Source of the DNA: Perkinsus chesapeaki ATCC PRA-425
Taxonomy: Eukaryota > Protista > Perkinsozoa
DNA length: 44,214 bases
Assembly: GCA_013115145.1 (NCBI GenBank)
Contig: JAAPAO010000272.1
Coordinates: forward strand, 1 to 44,214
Reading direction: 5' to 3'
This document shows positions 1,394 to 44,063 of this stretch, one piece after another. Made by a program: the position numbers and the translations under genes. Each line of letters opens with the position of its first letter. The first letter of the stretch is position 1. A model generated the notes under the pieces. It did not search any database. It was not told the DNA's origin and was given only the letters and a program-made list of their open reading frames with translations.

Positions 1394-3507
1394 TTAAGCA
1401 TCGCCAACCTCCTCCGCCCTCTCTCGCTTAGCGCTCCTTAAGTACGACTTCAACTTCGCCAGTGCACTCAAAAGCTCGGACTTTACACAAGCAATGCATA
1501 GACGGATATAAAGAAAAGCTACAATGCCAATAATAGCCCACGCGTACCTGAAACGATAATCAAACAGCTAGGATTACTCCATTCTATCACCATGGCCATC
1601 CTAGCGGCACCAAGGTCTCTATTATGAGATAAAAGTTAACACCAATAACTAAACATGCCAACATCCACATAATAGACGTCCAAACGTGCCCGATCGCAAA
1701 CCTAAAAGCATAATTGCTTAACACTGTTAATTGTTCTTGGAATGACGAGTAAACCCGCACAAACCTACCTCCCCATAACTTCACGACTCATTGAGAAATG
1801 CAGTACGGGAAGTAAAGCGAAAGGCAATTGGATAGACTGAAGTATATTCAACCAAGCATTCACTCCATTCATAGCTGTTATCTCGCCCTAAAGTACACAG
1901 GATAACTGGAGAAAGTAACGCATAAAAACAGGAGGCCGCACGTGCTCTTGGGAACACTAACTTACCTGAAGTATTGCAAATGCCAACGCAGGCCCGAGGG
2001 CTATAGATCTGGTAATAAGTACACGAACCCACATAGGAATCTGCCACTGCATGAACCCTTCCATAACATATTGACCCGCCAGTGTACCTATAAGACATAC
2101 AAACAATAGCCGCTTCATAATTATCAAGCCTCACCTGTGAGAGTACTAGCCTGACCAGCTGCCAACACTCCCACTGCAAAAATGTACTTAACTCCAGAAG
2201 AGTACCTTACAAGGTAATTCCCACGGACAAAATGCATTAGATGTTTCGCTGCCATAATTCAATAAGTACGAAACACGCCTCTACCTACATAACAGCGGCA
2301 AGAGCACCAGCTGCATTTTCCAGGCCGATATTAGAACAAACACCAGCCATGCCTTCGGGGGTGTGACATTGACAAGCAGGGTCGCTCGGGCTGCATACGG
2401 AGGAATCCCAATCTAAACATAAAGTGAGATAAATGGATGAAGACAAAACTCACCCTCGGGACTTGCTAGGCAGGCAAGAGGACCATTTTGAAGTGTTGCG
2501 CATTGACGGGAGAACATACCATGAGCAAAAGCAGACACCACCGCCAAGTTAATAAGGAATGATACAGATAAAGACGATGTTGAATCGATGAGGAAATATC
2601 TAAAAAAAGAGAATCTAACAGTTTCAAAAGATACCAGTGGGAAAAGAATCCTTGCGAGTGCGCACTTATTAGCTTGTTTGATGTTCCTTTCCTCGCTGCG
2701 ATCAATCTGCCTCGATCGAGTAAGAGCTGAATGTAGGTATAAGTTATGGGGCATAATGACGGCACCAATAAGGCCAACCATTTGCATTACAGCATAACTA
2801 GCAACCAAAGGGATAAAGCCCTTGAAGATATCTTCAGCTGGTGGAGCCGAGATACCCATATCGACAAAGAAGCATATCATCATGGTTAGAATTAATACAA
2901 ATATAAAAGCTTCTAAGACTCTTATACCATGAAACAAATGTAGTGTTAGAAATGTTAAAGTATCAACAGCGGTTATAAGTGTACCAGCCCATAATGGTAT
3001 ATTAAGCAACACTCTGAAGGCTATCGCTGTGCCCAGAACCTCTTGAATGTCTGAGCCTATAATAGCTATCTCGGCCATTATCCACAGAACTGTTGCTGTA
3101 CTTCTAGGATAACGAGCTCTACAATGCTCAGCAAGGTGTACACCAGTAACAGCAGCGATACGGCAAGCAAGCACTTGAAGTAATAAACCAAATATATGTG
3201 CAAGCAACAAAACCCAAAGCATTTGATAACCAGTAAAGGCACCTGCTTGCAGATCAGCTTCAAGGTTACCAGGATCTAGATAGGCTAATGACATTAGCCA
3301 TCCAGGACCAGTATATTTAAAGAATGTACGAAATGAGAACTTAACCCCTGGTGGATCGACCGGGATAACGACTGATTTCTCCTTGCCAAATACTCTTGAA
3401 GATGACGGAACAACTTCCTTTTCTTTAATAGGGCTATTCCCACTCATGGAGGACGCCTGCTCCTCAGTGTCGATAGTGAATTGATCTAAAGGTTTTTCAG
3501 TGGACAT
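1394..3507 (-). CDS. NRAMP: NRAMP/SLC11 divalent metal (Fe/Mn) transporter, multi-exon
   Basis: [24 protein letters not shown] (TM1 DPGN) and [15 protein letters not shown] (TM6 MPH) signatures, with many hydrophobic helices. Downstream exons continue to [16 protein letters not shown]...EEVGDA* (stop at 1394-1396). ATG at 3507 is preceded by a pyrimidine tract and AG. Confidence 0.95.
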
Positions 3508-4366
3508 CACTGAGGGAAACTAAATCTGCGGTGAGTTCGTCTATATGCTAAACCGAGGCAATCGGGATTCCCAGCAACGCATCATTAAATACAGCAAACA
3601 TGAAACTTGAACTATACCGTTCCATAGAGACACAGAATGTCACATTCTGAATGTGCAACGAACAGCAGCAAAGGTTGAGAGATAGAGACGCTCTTTACCA
3701 CCCTACGAAAAAGTGCGCCATTCCTCGGGTTCGTGGAGCGGAGCTGGTACGCCCACACAACGTGCAATTATGAAGTGATACTCTACTGTGAAGTCTATAA
3801 TGTCGCCATAGCATTTCGTCCGCGATTCTCAACAGGTTTGAATAGCTCTACCATGCAGTACTCCTTAACGCGGGGACTCGAACTCGAGTGGGATGCGGTA
3901 CAAGCCTTGTAAAGCGTGCAATGTACACGTGCTGCTGCATGTTAAATAATAAAGAACCCAGGGGAGGAAAGTACAGCTTCATAGAGGAGGAGTTTTGATA
4001 CGCTCTGTATTAAGCCTCTCGATGGCTCTGAGGATCTACAATCATAACTAAACAGCAACTACGAATAAGTTAGAATTCAACCATATAGGCTCCCGAAGAG
4101 AATAGGTGACGTGGCATACGGTAATGGTCCATGCTGGCAAGTGTACCCTAACTTACTTAATATGTTGTAACTTACCTATCAACGCCACATATGTGGACAT
4201 TATCATGGACATCCACATATTATTGTTCTCCATGCTATTGCTCGTGGCATTCATTCGTCCAAGCTCGGCATGGAGCCGTGACGCCAAATCTTGAGTTAGG
4301 AAAGACGCGAGATTTTGCAAGATACGCAAGATTACCCTCACTCTCATCGACACCTTTGTTGTTGTT

Positions 4367-20874: not shown

Positions 20875-22223
20875 ATGTTTAATCATCGGTATCGTCTCCT
20901 TTCACCATCTATGGTGTCTATTTTAATTCTCGCAGCCTTCCGCTGCTGCTGCACCACCACCACGCCTGCCGCCTACTCCGCTACTTCAATCGCCTCCTCC
21001 ATGAACTCGACGTCTCTGAAGACCGAAGACGACGACGATGCTTCGATAAATGTTGGGGAAGTATCCAATTCCGCAAGAAATGCTTCCTCGGGCTTTACAA
21101 TCGATATTCCTGCAATGCTTCTAACACCCCCGATTTTCATCGTCCCTGCTGCCCGCCGGTACGAGTGTGCCCAGCGCTCGGTCACCTGCAACATCGTAAC
21201 GGACAGTGCTCTTCTTTTGCCTGACAATGCAGACGGTTGGACTCTGGATGACCTGATGGAATACGTTCTAGTGGGAGATCCAGTAAATATGGCGCCTGAA
21301 GGAGATGGGCCCTCTGACCCAGTTCCGTCGGTGTCATCTAGTGCTGAAAAAAGGAAAGAGATCACGTACTGGGTCATCTCATTCGCTTTTACCCACTAAC
21401 AGTCGTCGTCTTTAACAGGTTCGAATCTTTCGGTTCCTTCTCCGCCCCAACCGCTACTGATGGTCCTACAATTCTGTACAGGGTATGTTTTATCATTAAT
21501 TATACCATAGATATCTTGTTTGTTGTTTAGGTTTGGCTTCTGAGGAATCTTTCCCAAATGGCTTTAGGTTGGTATAATGTGAACCTGCGTGATCCCAGGA
21601 ACTCCTCACGAGGCACCCTTACCATCGGACTCTTGAACATCACTGATTTCGGTAAGGTATAAGTGCTGCTGCTGCTATTGCCTATTCACATCTTTCCTTC
21701 CTGTATCCCATCACATCACCCTTTAGATCTCCCCGTTCCCACTAATATTGGCCAATTCGGCTTCGGCTTCGGCAGCGCCGATGGTAGGAATAATACTAAC
21801 TATCAGTTCCAGTTCATATTAATAATATTATTCCTCTCAGTTGACCTACCAAATGATCCTTGCCAAGTTCGTCTGATAGTTCTAACTACATTTTTCGGCA
21901 CAGCTTTAGCGGTGCTTGTTATATTAATACTTGTCTCCATTATTGGAACGCTTAGATTGCCCAAATTTGACCACCTTTTCTGTGGGATATGCTGCGCTAG
22001 ACCATCGAATTCCCCTCCAACGGATACGCCAGTTATGGCTACAATGGTACGCGAGGAGGAGGAGGAAGGTGAAGATGAGAGAAGGACAGCACTCATCATC
22101 GGAGATCATCACACTCAACGAACACTGCGGCGATCGTCATCTGCTGCTCCTGCTTCCAGTGATGGTTCACCACCTCTCGAGCTTTTGGCGGCGGCTGCTG
22201 CAGCGGCTACCGGTAATCGGTGA
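20875..22223 (+). CDS. Type-I membrane protein A (signal, ectodomain, one TM, acidic/Ser-rich tail)
   Basis: Signal-like MVSILILAAFRCCC, exon FWLLRNLSQMALGWYNVNLRDP, TM LIVLTTFFGTALAVLVILILVSIIG and juxtamembrane FCGICC. Confidence 0.55.
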
Positions 22224-28176: not shown

Positions 28177-30857
28177 TCAAGTCAGATTCGTAGACGTGAC
28201 AGAGTCACCTGGTATGCTACAAAGCATCTCGTTGTCGGAGTCCTCAACCCGGCCAAAGAACACACTTCTGAGTCCATTACGATAAAACAGCGGCCCATAC
28301 CACGATGTCAGATTAATCTGAGTAGTGCTGCTATTGACAAACCGCTCAGCTGCCTTCATCACCACCACCTCTGGATGCTGTAGAGTATTATAAAGCCGAT
28401 TATCGACAGGAACTCTCCAAGAGTCATCAAAAGGCTCTTCTCTCAAGTTGTATTCGATATACAAATGATTGTGATCATTCGCTTGAAGGATCCAAGACTG
28501 AGGGAATGCTCACTTTCCACACTCCCTCGAATGCATACCCGTCCGTTGTCGTGCTTTCGTAAATAATAACCGTCTTGAAGTACTGTAGGGAGTACTTCGG
28601 TCTCTATGCGATAGAAGTCCTAAACAAGGCATGTTGCTCATTCATGGCAATAATTAAACCATACCTCTGTATGGATATGAAGATCAATATCACCGTCCCA
28701 GTCTAAGAGCTTCCCGAACTTGAGCGATCCGAGGAGCGCACCGTCGGTTATCATGTATCTGAATATTCCCTATTGCCAGCTACTGATAATGAGACCTGAA
28801 GCCTAGACGTTTAAACAGATCGTGAGTGTAGTCCATCAGTCTTCGAAGGGTTCTCTGACAGCATGGAGGTATCGAGAAGCCTTTGTACCTGATGTTAAGG
28901 TAAATAGTATGATGCCACCACCGGTGCTCACGCACATCCACGTCATGTCGCAGTTGGTCGACTGGATGGTGCAGCCGAAATTTATTGATCGTCCGTCGAC
29001 TGTTTCGAAACTGTGCTCACGATAATAGTACGGCATTTCACTTCAGTGCTACATTTTCAAATCATTATGGCGCATGAATAGCTGGCCTTGAAGATATGGA
29101 GTGGTCGTGATGTTACCAGCAGAGTCACCAGTGTCGAAGTACCCCTGGCGGGGTGGTCCAAAGTAAAATGATTGCACTTCAGGGCTGAGGACTGGCTATT
29201 CTTATAATGCTGTCATCCGCGTCCACCTTTGAAGAAAGTCCTTCCTTCCCCAAAGATGTGGATGTACTTGATCCTCGGCAGGAGAGATGTCCTCCATGTA
29301 GGCCGATGCACATCTGCATTGGCGAGTCTACAGGCGAAGTTGGCAAGGATGTTACGTGGCGAATCCAAAAGGCATTTTATCATCTTTCGGTCCCCAAGCT
29401 TGAAGGTCCCTCATGTGCAACATAAAATCGAGTATAACCCACTCACTAGTCATCTCTGGATGAAAGTAATGAGATGCCTGGAGAACACCAAGGGACATTA
29501 GAAAACTTGGTGATGTCGTGGCTGAAAGTTTGCATGGCGGACGAACAAAACCTAATTGTCATACTCTACAACAGGTGCTGAGTCTTCTATACCATCCGGC
29601 ACGGGCTGGAAACTCCAGGTGTAAGTCGGGTCGAAAGATAGATGCCAATGCTCAGTTCTCAACTTGTACGAGTAATCCACGTAAACATTGCCTTTATCAA
29701 TGGAAGGGCCACCGACAAAACCAACCTTGGTAGTGGACAGAGTCTAACGGTAACATTAAATAACATCTGTAGGAGTATCGGAGTCACATCAATCATCAAC
29801 TTCAGCGAGTCCCTCGATCTCGGCAGCATAGACCCTGTGACGATGAAGACAAACGGCGTGCTGACCAAACCAGACCTAATCATATTATTAAGCACCTAAA
29901 CTCAAACTTCCTGTCAAACATGTTGATGCCAAGTTTCTTACCCTGCCAGATGGCGCTCCCTCGTATCCGTATACGACTTTCCATCTTTCGCGCTGCGCAA
30001 CGATTTCATCTTCTTCTTGGCAGCCACCTCTTTGCAATACAACCGCGGACTCTGGGAATCTCTCAAATAGGGTCATAAGGAACTGATATGCTGTCATCAA
30101 CGGGCTGCTGCTGCTTCCAGTACCCTTAAAGAGGGGCAACCCTCGGGTATAAGGAAACTAACATCTGCGAAGGGGTGAGCTCCGTCAGATACTGCATGCT
30201 CGAATTTAAACCCATCATAGTAGGCGTGTTGCAGTATAGTCTGGCCGTATACAGCAAGCATTGGCCAATGGCTAGCATCCAATAGGTAACTGAACCTCAC
30301 TACAGTACCTGTGTTGTCTGAGCCATCACCTCCCTCACCTATGTTCAAGTGCCTCCTTAACAAGTGCTCTGATGGTCCATAGTGATATATCACAACCAAG
30401 GTTACGGAAGGCAAGCTGCCAGTAAACTAGTATCTTTTTAAGCAACATTGCTGCAGTGTACTGTTGGATGCATTATTGCTACTATTCCTCCTGCCGTTGC
30501 TATAGCGTTGTAACACTGGGGAAGATAGTCCGCCCTTTGGGACACAACTTCCTTCATCAATGACACTGCCAAGGCAACACCTTCAACTGCGCATTCGTAA
30601 GGGTAGCTGGCGTGTGATATCGACCGCAATGATTGGTTACCCAAGTCGGTTACCTACAACAGGTTGCTGAGAACTAGTGGCGTCTTAAGGGTCACCTCGA
30701 CACGGGGACAGAGCCGACGCAAATCTCGCATGGCCTGTGGCCAATCTATTCCATCCATTGTGGAAGTGCATGACGTGAGCTCCTCGATATAATTACTGCT
30801 AGACACCGGAAAGCTTATTAACAGCAGCAGCAGCACGCATGCTTTTTTTATAAACAT
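28177..30857 (-). CDS. Hypothetical secreted multi-exon protein (possibly two genes)
   Basis: [21 protein letters not shown] signal at 30857, then a series of GT-AG-bounded open segments on the minus strand (e.g. [15 protein letters not shown]..., [15 protein letters not shown]...). No family recognised; the 3' end and gene count are uncertain. Confidence 0.4.
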
Positions 30858-36863: not shown

Positions 36864-37117
36864 CAACAATAATCGATCACCAGGGCGCGCGCTTTTTTCA
36901 AACCTGATCTATAAGGCCGTGCGCTGTGAACGCGTGTCACAAGTCTTTAGATGAAATCGGATGTGATGGCGATTTAACGACGTTGAACTGAGTCCTTCGG
37001 ACGATGATGTGACATGTATTAGGCTAGGGTATTATTAATCCCACTGTGATTTGAGATATACTAGCCCTTAACGACGCCATTGCATCTTTGATTTCCAGTG
37101 ACTTTGGTTCTAGAACT

Positions 37118-38119
37118 ATGAAAGGTGGCAGCTTTGGCAAGGGTAAAGGCAAGGGCAAGGGCTCTGGTAAAGGCAAGGGCTTCAGCGGCAAAGGCGGCAA
37201 GGGAAAGGGTAAAGGAAAAGGAGGAAAAGGAAAGGGAGGAAAAGGAAAGGGAGGACCTAAGGGAGCCAACAAGGTCATCGTAGAGCCTCATCGTTTCGAA
37301 GGCTGCTTCGTGTCCCGAGGCAAAGATGAGGCCCTTCTTACCCGTAACATGGTCCCTGGTGAGAGTGTCTATGGTGAGAAGCGTATCACTGTTGAGAAGC
37401 CAGTAGAAGGTCAAGATCAACCTGAGAAGATTGAATACCGTGTCTGGAACCCATTCCGTTCCAAGCTTGGTGCTACCATTGTTGGTGGTGTTGCTAATAT
37501 GCCTATTAAACCTGGTAGCAAGGTTCTCTATTTGGGTGCTGCTTCTGGTACTACTGTATCACACGTCAGTGATATGGTTGGCCCCACTGGCTGTGTCTAT
37601 GCCGTTGAATTTGCTCATCGTCCTGGTCGTGATTTAACCAACATGGCCAAGAAGCGTCCCAATATTGTAAGGCAGTGTATTCTTTATATAACAACATGTC
37701 TCTTCTTCTCAGGTGCCTATCATCGAGGATGCTCGTCAGCCTCTTCGCTATAGAATGTTGGTGCCTATGGTTGATGTGATCTTCGCTGATGTTGCCCAGC
37801 CCGATCAAGCTCGTATTGTAGCTGTTAACGCTCAGAACTTCCTCAAGAACCACGGATGGTACATTATATCCATCAAGGCTAACTGTGTTGATTCCACTGC
37901 CGCTCCAGAGGCTGTTTTCGCCAGTGAGATTGAGAAGCTTAAGAAGGATAAACTGAAGTAAGTGTGCCGTTGTTGTTGTTGTTGTTGTTAAAGATGTTGA
38001 TGATTGCCTCCTTGTTTATTATTAGGCCTAAGGAACAGCTTACTTTGGAGCCTTATCATAGAGATCATGCTGTTGTTATTGGCCAATACCAACCATTGAA
38101 GCATAAGAAGGCTGAGTAG
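37118..38119 (+). CDS. NOP1: Fibrillarin (box C/D snoRNP 2'-O-methyltransferase), 3 exons, Gly-Lys N-terminal repeat
   Basis: [71 protein letters not shown] and [17 protein letters not shown]. Introns at about 37668-37712 and 37959-38025. Confidence 0.98.
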
Positions 38120-38173
38120 TTGCTGCTGCGATTTACCATAATCATCCTCAATACCGCCTAAGTCACTATCTGC

Positions 38174-38211
38174 AGCTATCTGGAGGTTAGTAATAACCTC
38201 CAGCCTTGGCT
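38174..38211 (+). other. Stem-loop with GNRA (GUAA) tetraloop downstream of fibrillarin
   Basis: Perfect 10-bp stem CTGGAGGTTA/TAACCTCCAG (38180-38203), extendable by AGCTA/TGGCT across a small internal loop. Confidence 0.5.
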
Positions 38212-38585
38212 AACGTTTCTACCATTAATAATACTAATGACATTGGGTTGAATAGTCTTATTATTATTGTTGTCAATGTGACGGCTGGTTTCTTCTTGAT
38301 TTTCAGGGAACTTCTCCCAGACCCTCTCCGCTGTAACTATCAACACCTAACCCTTAACAGATGTTACAGCCCTAGCAATTGGCTAATACCAAGTTTAATA
38401 ACATATATACTGTTCAACGTCAATGCACTGCTCTAGGACCCAGACAGGATACCTGGCAGGATATATTCATGCTCGAGTAAAGCAGCCTAAGGGAAAGCTT
38501 TAAATTATAGTTGACCACAGTTTACCTATTTTTTATTCCAAGACTGGCAGAAGCATTATGGTATTTATTATTAATAGTTTTGATA

Positions 38586-42526: not shown

Positions 42527-43612
42527 CTACTTCAAATATTCAGCAATAGTAATAGTTCGTGAGTCTAGATCGAAAGACGAGAAGAACGTTGTGAAGAAAG
42601 AGCTACCGAGAGTGGCTTGTGAGCCATCGCAAAACCGAAGAGCAAGTTCACACAATGTACCATTACATCCATTGATATATTTCTCGGGGGGAATGCTTAT
42701 AACAAAAGGACGCTGCTGATCTCCGACATTGAACGTGAGTGTCGGGAAGTATCTTTGCCCTTTGTCTGTGATATACCAAACTCCATTCGTGGACTCGAGG
42801 TGCACCCCGGGCCCAGCGAAAGATAAGATCTTAATAAGAAGGCCTTGAAATATATACCTCGGGATAACAAAAGGAGTTGACCCAGAGTCGAAGATAACAC
42901 CGCCATTTTCTGCTTGCCGCACGAATGTTTCCCCGGTAGAGCTGACTAGACCATAAGAGAAGAGATTCGATTCGAAGTGACTATCCTCACGGGGTTCTGT
43001 CATCGGAATTGTAGTAACAGGCCCCTCGAAAACACACAACCAAAACCATAAACCGAATATTATATATCCGGTAAATGAACTCACATCACCATCGCAACAT
43101 ATCGATACTGCGTACTTGCTGATTATATTATTCTTGTAAAGGTGGCGCGTCAATGTGTCAGGATTAGCGTAATCATCGAAAGCAAGACCAAGAAGATTCA
43201 CCGGCCTCCAGTTTGGCAATAGTGGGCTAGGAGCGTAACCTATAATTAAACGGATCTTCATGTTCAGCTGGTATTCCCCGACTACGACGGTGCTTTCATG
43301 CAAGACAGTGATAAGCTTCCCACCATTAGCGAGTGTGACGATGTATGTATCTTCAGCATAAGGATTACATTTGCCAGGGCAAGAATAGCAGCCTGTTTGT
43401 AAATGCTCGCAGGCACACTGACCGTAGGTTTTCTTATACCAGTCTTTATAAACGAGATAAATGCCACTGAGCCTTGTATCGATATGCATTTTCAAAGGCT
43501 GTCCATCGAACGACACTCCAGTAGCAATACCGTCTTCGAAAGGTAAAAGCACCTTGCTGCATGCCAAAGGATACCAACCACCTAGGACGATCAAGATAGT
43601 CGATGGTTGCAT
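42527..43612 (-). CDS. Pepsin-like (A1) aspartyl protease homolog, intronless, with signal peptide; first catalytic motif altered (DTR)
   Basis: Signal MQPSTILIVLGGWYPLACS, MHIDTRLSG (DTG expected), Cys insert CACEHLQTGCYSCPGKC, NLLGLAF, IFDSGST, PTLTF, ATLGSSFFTTFFSSFDLDSRTITIA. Confidence 0.88.
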   Translation of the reverse strand: MQPSTILIVLGGWYPLACSKVLLPFEDGIATGVSFDGQPLKMHIDTRLSGIYLVYKDWYKKTYGQCACEHLQTGCYSCPGKCNPYAEDTYIVTLANGGKLITVLHESTVVVGEYQLNMKIRLIIGYAPSPLLPNWRPVNLLGLAFDDYANPDTLTRHLYKNNIISKYAVSICCDGDVSSFTGYIIFGLWFWLCVFEGPVTTIPMTEPREDSHFESNLFSYGLVSSTGETFVRQAENGGVIFDSGSTPFVIPRYIFQGLLIKILSFAGPGVHLESTNGVWYITDKGQRYFPTLTFNVGDQQRPFVISIPPEKYINGCNGTLCELALRFCDGSQATLGSSFFTTFFSSFDLDSRTITIAEYLK

Positions 43613-44063
43613 GACAACTTGAACACTAACTACTTTAACCAACTCTCTGTAACGCAATTCACGACCTCAAAGAGACTTTATATCCTTCGGGTCATTTGAA
43701 AAGTGACTATAAACCGAAACTGTCTGTCCGCCAGTTAGAAATAACTGACGAGCACGCATGCGCAAGGGGAAGGCACGCATTGGATGGAGCGGCGGGGCGT
43801 AGTTCATGACGCTCCACCAACGAAACCATTAGAATGCTGTGCTTTACGGACGTATGACAGCGCAGAAGCTTACTCTACGTAAGCTTATGTAGATCAGATC
43901 AGATCACTCATAGACTCACATTGATTGCAAGCTGAATGACAGCATATCCAAAGCTTAGCACTACATTTAAAGAACGTGTGCATGCGTGCTGGGGAGCTGT
44001 TAAAATACTTGATACACTTCGCAGCGTTGTGTGCGCAACGGTGAGCTTCATAGTTCGAACAAA

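Follow-up and report, generated by a model that had tools for sequence, protein, structure and literature searches.

The single fibrillarin gene found in the genome of the protist Perkinsus chesapeaki, a parasite of clams, encodes a protein in which a tail of 49 residues, composed mainly of glycine and lysine and free of arginine, stands in the place of the glycine- and arginine-rich (GAR) domain. The gene lies on contig JAAPAO010000272.1 of strain ATCC PRA-425 (assembly GCA_013115145.1), all 44,214 nt of which were analysed and are referred to here as the window. We consider the best explanation as a whole, and a likely one, to be that this is the only fibrillarin of the organism, that its lysine tail is a working one, and that the tail arose in a coordinated and ancestral swap of arginine for lysine.

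RGG/GAR domains are the standard example of RNA binding driven by arginine, of regulation by protein arginine methyltransferases (PRMTs) and of nucleolar phase separation, and laboratory swaps of their arginines for lysine usually weaken or abolish these functions. A lineage living on lysine-only tails in its single fibrillarin, in GAR1, in a nucleolin-like protein and in Sm/LSm proteins would show that arginine is not strictly required. The protein sequence is already public and is named fibrillarin in UniRef. What appears to be new is a member of the family that fails the definition of a GAR domain while its tail occupies the GAR domain's place.

Identity and structure of the gene

The gene consists of three exons (Table 1), each of which includes part of the Pfam fibrillarin profile PF01269, namely positions 1–122 on 37118–37666 (177 bits, E=3.5e-52), 123–203 on 37713–37955 (118 bits, E=4.6e-34) and 205–226 on 38027–38116 (20 bits, E=4e-4); the curated cut-off for this profile is 27 bits. 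Contiguous, full-length coverage of the profile over three consecutive exons places the protein in the fibrillarin family. A glycine-rich stretch in exon 1, which from knowledge of the family we take to be the S-adenosylmethionine (SAM)-binding motif, places it among the Rossmann-type methyltransferases. The three exons together encode 295 residues, which is the length of the database protein P0001 (FOL47_004818, 'hypothetical protein', P. chesapeaki), and P0001 shares 100 % identity with exon 1. Searches were run with single exons or with the stored P0001.

A six-frame search of the whole assembly (41.7 Mb) with PF01269 found this locus as the only fibrillarin and no second, RGG-bearing copy. 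An earlier note on this stretch, made from the letters alone, had proposed a fibrillarin with its GAR domain replaced, and had named an RGG-bearing main copy elsewhere as a finding that would overturn the idea. The profile covering three exons, with the tail directly upstream and in frame, bears out the proposed identity, and the search of the assembly disposes of the objection. Judged by its sequence, the locus encodes, as a single-copy gene, fibrillarin (Nop1/FBL), which is the 2'-O-methyltransferase of the box C/D small nucleolar ribonucleoproteins.

Table 1. Features of the fibrillarin locus and of two further genes in the window
Feature	Position	Strand	Details and basis
AG acceptor for spliced-leader trans-splicing	37097..37098	+	Contig (run X1, record 1) matches 37097-37275 with no mismatch
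5' untranslated region, 19 nt, downstream of the spliced leader	37099..37117	+	Contains no ATG; sequence and transcript contig
Arginine-free Gly-Lys tail (codons 1-49), in the place of the GAR domain	37118..37264	+	Translation
Exon 1 (183 codons)	37118..37666	+	Tail and Fibrillarin profile 1-122, including the SAM-binding stretch; end set by the joint in contigs of runs X1, X2 and X4
Intron 1 (46 nt, GT..AG)	37667..37712	+	Joint 37666->37713 in contigs of three runs, no mismatch
Exon 2	37713..37957	+	Fibrillarin profile 123-203; ends within a split Lys codon; X1 record 6 ends exactly at 37957
Intron 2 (68 nt, GT..AG)	37958..38025	+	Contains a (GTT)n run; inferred from sequence and profile continuity
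Exon 3	38026..38119	+	Fibrillarin profile 205-226; stop TAG 38117-38119; exons sum to 295 aa
Nramp metal transporter exon	2416-3510	-	E=2e-67
Eukaryotic aspartyl protease	42530-43657	-	E=4e-9

The tail consists of 25 Gly, 17 Lys, 3 Ser, 2 Phe, 1 Pro and 1 Met (51 % Gly, 35 % Lys, net charge +17), a composition that fits a glycine-rich, basic and disordered N-terminal extension. The arginine-free Gly-Lys extension of 49 residues with sparse Phe that had been described from this stretch is the exact translation of these codons. Glycine is encoded by GGA, GGC or GGT and lysine by AAG or AAA, the GC content of the tail DNA is 53 % compared with approximately 45 % for the window, and the reading frame runs unbroken into the methyltransferase domain. 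As there are no repeated RGG/RG motifs and no Arg among the 49 residues, the tail is by definition not a GAR domain, though it has the same position, and it offers no arginine for asymmetric dimethylation by PRMT1. Comparison with other sequences indicates that the tail is not a product of chance, as its composition is kept in two other Perkinsus species and in approximately 100 related proteins.

A further version of the fibrillarin coding sequence occurs in runs X1 and X2, where it was observed over 37333–37892 and differs by approximately 10 %, mostly at third codon positions. Intron 1 is removed from it at a shifted but equivalent joint, and its 5' end, hence its tail, lies outside the contig coverage. 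A diverged allele could account for it, and so could a copy absent from the assembly or a sequence from another Perkinsus species in the same study.

The tail in the mRNA

Contigs of public runs, one of which (X3) is an environmental metatranscriptome, were placed on positions 36900–38300. In the first record of run X1, the match to 37097–37275 is preceded by TCCTTTACCGTAGCCATCTTGGCTCA. This equals the Perkinsus spliced leader PmaSL1, ACCGTAGCCATCTTGGCTCAAG (PMC3101222), and the last AG of the leader overlaps the genomic AG at 37097–98. Between the leader and the ATG at 37118, the first one in the mature mRNA, lie 19 nt of genomic sequence. Intron 1 is excised precisely (37666->37713) in contigs of three runs, and X3 includes exact matches across 37190–37587. 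The (GTT)n repeat at 37961–37999 was skipped in read mapping, and the joint of intron 2 is placed by the sequence and the continuity of the profile.

The mRNA of the gene receives its spliced leader by trans-splicing, and its first ATG is the start of the Gly-Lys tail. Because the spliced leader is joined upstream and intron 1 has been removed, the Gly-Lys exon is part of the mRNA, and the earlier concern that it might be missing from the transcript is answered by its presence in leader-capped molecules spliced at intron 1. An annotation artefact, in which the tail would be untranslated leader and the protein would start at a later Met, is excluded for practical purposes by the spliced-leader junction, since the leader is joined only 19 nt upstream of the tail ATG. 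The next in-frame Met (residue 78) lies within the conserved fibrillarin domain, and an in-frame tail of conserved composition is found in complete transcript open reading frames of many dinoflagellates. Hence, we regard such an artefact as extremely improbable.

Lysine and arginine tails among fibrillarins

Almost all of the best 120 relatives found with exon 1 as the query have arginine-free Gly-Lys tails (K-type), among them those of Perkinsus olseni, Perkinsus marinus, Polarella, Symbiodinium and Scrippsiella, and cluster look-up added Noctiluca, Karlodinium and Biecheleria. As a search with exon 1 could favour Gly-Lys tails through shared words, it was repeated using the domain alone (residues 52–295). 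This added Amoebophrya (Syndiniales), which is also K-type (26 G, 19 K, 0 R). RGG tails (R-type) were found in Toxoplasma, two Cryptosporidium species, Babesia ovis, Vitrella and the cryptophyte Baffinella. The earlier guess that the Gly-Lys tail might be lineage-wide is therefore upheld, with K-type tails in Perkinsus species and in dinoflagellates including Amoebophrya and Noctiluca.

The two types differ in more than the basic residue used (Table 2). In the 101 complete K-type tails taken together, there are 7 Arg and 1720 Lys in 4464 residues. The repeat has a period of two residues (GK) in the Perkinsus tail compared with RGG in R-type tails, Asp occurs regularly in the tails of dinoflagellates, and indels distinguish the tails of the Perkinsus species from one another. 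In the folded domain, the two types are equally rich in arginine, at 6.2 % in K-type and 6.4 % in R-type proteins, so the swap is confined to the low-complexity tail.

Table 2. Composition of K-type and R-type fibrillarin tails
Type	Tails	Gly	Lys	Arg	Asp	Phe	Net charge per residue
K-type	101 (complete)	45 %	39 %	0.1 %	5.5 %	1 %	+0.33
R-type	12	55 %	2 %	20 %	0.5 %	3 %	+0.22

Trees of the fibrillarin domain were built from 152 rows (quick) and 46 rows (careful). A separate and well-supported group lies outside the Myzozoa, and its tails span the range between mixed RG/KG and GK alone. P0097 is one of the mixed members; a fibrillarin annotated in the pelagophyte Pelagomonas calceolata belongs to its cluster, and in the tail of this cluster RG repeats come first (GGGRGRGGKGRGRGGG) and KG repeats last, with 7 Arg kept. 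The Gly-Lys fibrillarin tail is thus, on these sequences, convergent and not unique to the Perkinsus lineage, a similar but partial swap being present in the pelagophyte Pelagomonas. The earlier note had listed among possible refutations that KG-type extensions might be common in unrelated fibrillarins; they do occur by convergence, in the Pelagomonas group, but they are not a common state.

In Theileria parva, the tail (P0155; listed with P0150) is degenerate and K-rich, with 10 K, 1 R and few Gly repeats. This is a third, separate departure from arginine, and the relative Babesia ovis keeps RG.

Comparison with known systems

Canonical fibrillarins (human FBL, yeast Nop1 and those of Toxoplasma, Cryptosporidium and Vitrella) resemble the Perkinsus protein in having a Gly-rich, basic and disordered N-terminal tail of approximately 40–65 residues with an occasional Phe, and the methyltransferase domains of apicomplexans and Vitrella are 75–80 % identical to that of Perkinsus. 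The Perkinsus tail departs from them in having no Arg, and so no PRMT substrate, in its GK rather than RGG period and in a share of basic residues that is approximately twice as high. Phe is rarer in K-type tails as a group, at approximately 1 % (2 of 49 residues in the Perkinsus tail), compared with approximately 3 % in R-type tails. Pelagomonas calceolata and its marine relatives share tails that are partly or wholly Gly-Lys, but they form the unrelated group described above, and the Pelagomonas-cluster tail, with its 7 Arg, is partly intermediate. Archaeal fibrillarin has the same methyltransferase fold and belongs to the same Pfam family but is without the N-terminal basic tail (PMC7608942), whereas the Perkinsus tail is full-length.

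A further counterpart, and the one relevant experiment found, is an engineered protein. Shubina et al. (2020; PMC7194090) changed every arginine of the human GAR domain to lysine (GAK). In HeLa cells the GAK domain showed more nucleolar accumulation and less import than GAR, and GAK-FBL did not rescue yeast nop1 (PMC7194090). What GAK-FBL has in common with the Perkinsus protein is a fibrillarin methyltransferase domain preceded by a Gly-Lys tail, but a viable organism relies on the Perkinsus form as its only fibrillarin, and partner proteins have been swapped there too. Given the failure of GAK-FBL in yeast, a viable lineage with a lysine-only tail is surprising.

No description of a natural lysine-type fibrillarin tail, or of RGG loss in this lineage, was found in the literature searched, outside which lie most subscription journals, so that an earlier mention is possible. 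A tree-of-life survey of fibrillarin makes no mention of lysine (PMC7608942), and RGG and lysine are both absent from a 2026 review on the RNA-binding proteins of dinoflagellates. Prior description, a further ground on which the earlier note would have been set aside, was hence not encountered.

These data bear on whether the swap needs any adaptive explanation. Lysine and arginine might be interchangeable in such a tail, AGR to AAR transitions and replication slippage having turned RGG into KG by neutral drift with function unchanged. A graded RG-to-KG tail within one protein of the Pelagomonas cluster indicates that intermediates are viable, and the indels between tails of Perkinsus species are as slippage would give. 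The degenerate, K-rich tail of T. parva, when Babesia keeps RG, points in the same direction; the genome of T. parva is AT-rich. However, under drift Arg should recur, AAR to AGR being a single transition, yet there are only 7 Arg to 1720 Lys in the 101 tails. The GC content of the Perkinsus tail is above rather than below that of the window, the arginine content of the folded domain is unchanged, the period went from RGG to GK and the density of basic residues nearly doubled. The engineered human protein is also not equivalent to its parent, as complementation in yeast fails and import and nucleolar accumulation are altered (PMC7194090). Though some features of the tails speak in part for drift, we consider it unlikely to explain the swap. 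The near-absence of Arg from approximately 4500 tail residues, when one transition leads from Lys to Arg, instead argues for selection against arginine and not for a mere tolerance of lysine.

Nitrogen economy is another candidate explanation. Nitrogen-limited marine plankton would have exchanged Arg (four N) for Lys (two N) in abundant nucleolar and small nuclear ribonucleoprotein (snRNP) proteins, and Perkinsus would have inherited the result. It is an established idea that marine microbes minimise the nitrogen cost of their proteomes, most of the K-type sequences come from marine metatranscriptomes, and the convergent case is in a second lineage of marine plankton, the cluster of the open-ocean pelagophyte P. 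calceolata and its marine relatives. Against this, arginine is not reduced in the folded domain, the approximately twofold number of basic residues per length in K-type tails cancels most of the saving, and Vitrella and the cryptophyte Baffinella, both of which are marine algae, keep RGG. We therefore give this explanation little credence, and less than drift.

The same swap in other proteins of the genome

The earlier note had suggested that further nucleolar and Sm proteins might have undergone the same change, and GAR1, a nucleolin-like protein, SmD3 and LSm4 of this genome do carry GK or KGG. GAR1 (contig C3254) has a GK-type tail at its C-terminus. The nucleolin-like protein (C2838), with an acidic region and two RRMs (RRM_1, E = 8e-44), has GK repeats after each RRM. 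The C-terminal tail of SmD3 (C3392) carries GK/KGG where RG/RGG is usual. For LSm4 (C431) the GK/KGG repeats are in a nearby downstream frame, which was taken for its tail; the tail of human LSm4 reads GRGRGGIPGTGRG at the corresponding place. Beyond these, NOL10 (C3118) ends in (GK)8, and (GK)8 is also found in a helicase of the Mtr4/Ski2 type (C2980). An RRM-linker-RRM protein is present on C619 in two inverted copies, with (GK)8 in the linker of one and (GK)10 in that of the other.

GAR1 relatives from metagenomes (L057–L059 and L087) have GK on both sides of the core, and in the closest, on metagenome contigs (78–80 % core identity), FGGKGGFGGKGG is found at the C-terminus. A more distant sequence from a marine metatranscriptome (56 % identity) has GK on both sides too. 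One equally close relative and more distant, fungal-looking ones keep RGG.

RGG and KG repeats were counted with strict patterns over the whole assembly, each alongside a reversed-pattern control. (GK)5 gave 51 matches at 19 loci (control 6) and (KGG)3 gave 10 matches at 6 loci (control 1), whereas (RGG)3 gave 0 matches (control 8). (GR)5 gave 5 matches, at 2 Arg-coding loci and 1 Gly-Ser locus (control 2). The two Arg-coding loci (C3:76840-76874 and C200:17797-17831; L029 and L030) were considered as RG domains and set aside, as they are most likely non-coding microsatellites, in which (GGTCGT)n lies beside (TGC)n runs and the translation reads GRGRGR and then CCCCCC. No SmD1 could be located in the 15 LSM matches or in the GK loci that were retrieved; the (GK)8 locus on C3118 was examined as a possible SmD1 and rejected because it is NOL10.

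Some further GK-bearing frames were observed. The two RRM-linker-RRM copies on C619 are approximately 9 kb apart and nearly identical, with repeats at 21415–21462 (-) and 30405–30464 (+) (loci L008 and L009) that are followed by YWDWGNDWG. At C256:53228-53665 (+) (locus L005, 1678–2571), a frame of 298 residues with no Pfam match has a long acidic D/E region and then GKGKGK blocks with FG spacers, a layout that resembles, as a resemblance only, that of nucleolar chaperones of the Nopp140/SRP40 type. GK/KGG runs are also present in apparent mobile-element proteins: at C998:1-1523 (L011), (GK)6 lies upstream of a retroviral-type aspartic protease motif (LLDTGSS), and on C341 (L024) a frame of 381 residues with no Pfam match has an N-terminal KGG/GK run.

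Arginine methylation machinery

Genes for PRMT1-like enzymes (PRMT_C on C189, C3 and C3270) and for PRMT5 (C2183) are present, so a loss of the arginine methylation machinery does not explain the swap. A search of the assembly for an SMN-type Tudor domain gave no match but cannot show absence, as the domain is short, the genes are intron-rich and no control genome was matched.

These findings raise the question of whether the tails have been rewired in their regulation, that is, moved beyond the reach of PRMTs and of readers such as SMN-Tudor and placed under lysine acetylation, methylation or ubiquitin-like tags. The earlier note had proposed a lysine methyl/acetyl code of this kind, along with a condensation made weaker in its cation-pi contacts, and both proposals are conjectural. 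As PRMT1-like enzymes and PRMT5 remain, the loss of Arg would remove specific substrates and not the enzymes, and SmD3 and LSm4, classical PRMT5 substrates, are likewise without RG repeats. The missing Tudor match would be in keeping with such a change, though that search carries little weight for the reasons given. A precedent for modification is provided by the GK repeats of mammalian DNMT1, which are reported to be acetylated and to bind USP7 (PMC5828336). On the other side, antibody labelling of symmetric dimethylarginine has been reported in dinoflagellates and ascribed by the authors to proteins including Sm (PMC12787238). We consider regulatory rewiring to be possible but doubtful, though it stands above drift and nitrogen economy.

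A possible function of the tail

The composition of the tail and its position suggest that it would act as a working lysine version of the GAR domain, in the form of a flexible, polycationic and disordered arm. Such an arm might bind rRNA and snoRNA non-specifically, target fibrillarin to the nucleolus and retain it there, and provide multivalent electrostatic contacts for the dense fibrillar phase. PRMTs would be unable to methylate it, and nuclear import would make use of a lysine-type signal and not of methyl-RGG. The weaker contacts of lysine with RNA and with aromatic residues may be offset by the higher charge density, Lys making up approximately 39 % with a two-residue period compared with approximately 20 % Arg in RGG tails. 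The doubled basic density, the two-residue period, the smaller number of aromatics and the Asp of dinoflagellate tails all point to contacts based on charge rather than on arginine-aromatic pairs.

The swap would have affected a set of RGG/RG proteins together, namely GAR1, the nucleolin-like protein, NOL10, SmD3 and LSm4, and a coordinated change of this kind would explain how a lysine tail can work here though all-lysine human fibrillarin fails in yeast. That failure and the multi-protein swap, taken together, suggest that partner proteins and the import route adapted along with the tail. A broader reading is that the branch of Perkinsus and the dinoflagellates replaced Arg by Lys across all RGG/RG disordered domains, including hnRNP-like ones, such that nucleolar assembly and snRNP biogenesis proceed without RG motifs or their methylation, with a partial repeat in pelagophytes. 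We incline to this broader reading, if only slightly. If true, it would constitute a natural R-to-K experiment across a proteome, partly repeated in pelagophyte algae.

The matched natural pairs, K-type in Perkinsus and dinoflagellates and R-type in Vitrella and apicomplexans, would make it possible to examine the contributions of arginine, of arginine methylation and of the readers, and to see how their loss is made good, be it by charge density, acidic spacers or the import route. P. marinus can be cultured and transfected, so the role of the lysine tail is directly testable.

Origin of the swap

The myzozoan sequences form a well-supported group (100/99) in the fibrillarin domain tree, and in an approximately unbiased (AU) test on the 46 rows a single clade of all myzozoan K-type sequences was not rejected (p = 0.167). 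Multi-protein trees place Perkinsus at the base of the dinoflagellates with Amoebophrya included (PMC3101222). Given this position, one swap in the common ancestor of Perkinsozoa and dinoflagellates appears to be the simplest reading. As Perkinsus shares the swap, it would also predate the loss of nucleosomal chromatin in dinoflagellates.

A number of points weigh against a working tail of coordinated and ancestral origin. Within the Myzozoa, the domain tree leaves Perkinsus, the dinoflagellates (all K-type), Vitrella, the apicomplexans and further sequences in an unresolved polytomy. Two RGG-type fibrillarins, P0116 and P0138, lie near Perkinsus with weak support, as do the GK-type P0014 and P0018, and two independent swaps, one in Perkinsus and one in dinoflagellates, are a possible reading of these sequences. 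The N-terminus of LSm7 reads HRGKGKGGYRGGKGKGGRGG, so that arginine is kept in one Gly-rich tail of this genome. Loose repeat patterns were uninformative, RGG-N{0,15}-RGG giving 756 matches compared with 974 in the control and KGG-N{0,15}-KGG 137 compared with 100, as these counts are dominated by chance matches and Ser codons. All-lysine Sm tails are hard to reconcile with the dimethylarginine labelling of dinoflagellates, unless the mark is on SmB or on other proteins.

Other observations

The fibrillarins P0116, which has an RGG tail, and P0018, which has a GK tail with Phe spacers, are both 84 % identical to the Perkinsus domain. They are encoded on two contigs of the same ENA series (L053, ERZ27280268, and L055, ERZ27280207, respectively), which represent compact eukaryotic genomes that are intron-poor or apparently intron-free, and in both the fibrillarin gene has kinesin and ferredoxin-like genes in its vicinity.

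Of the other genes in the window, the Nramp metal transporter exon and the eukaryotic aspartyl protease gene (Table 1) are unrelated to the fibrillarin finding.

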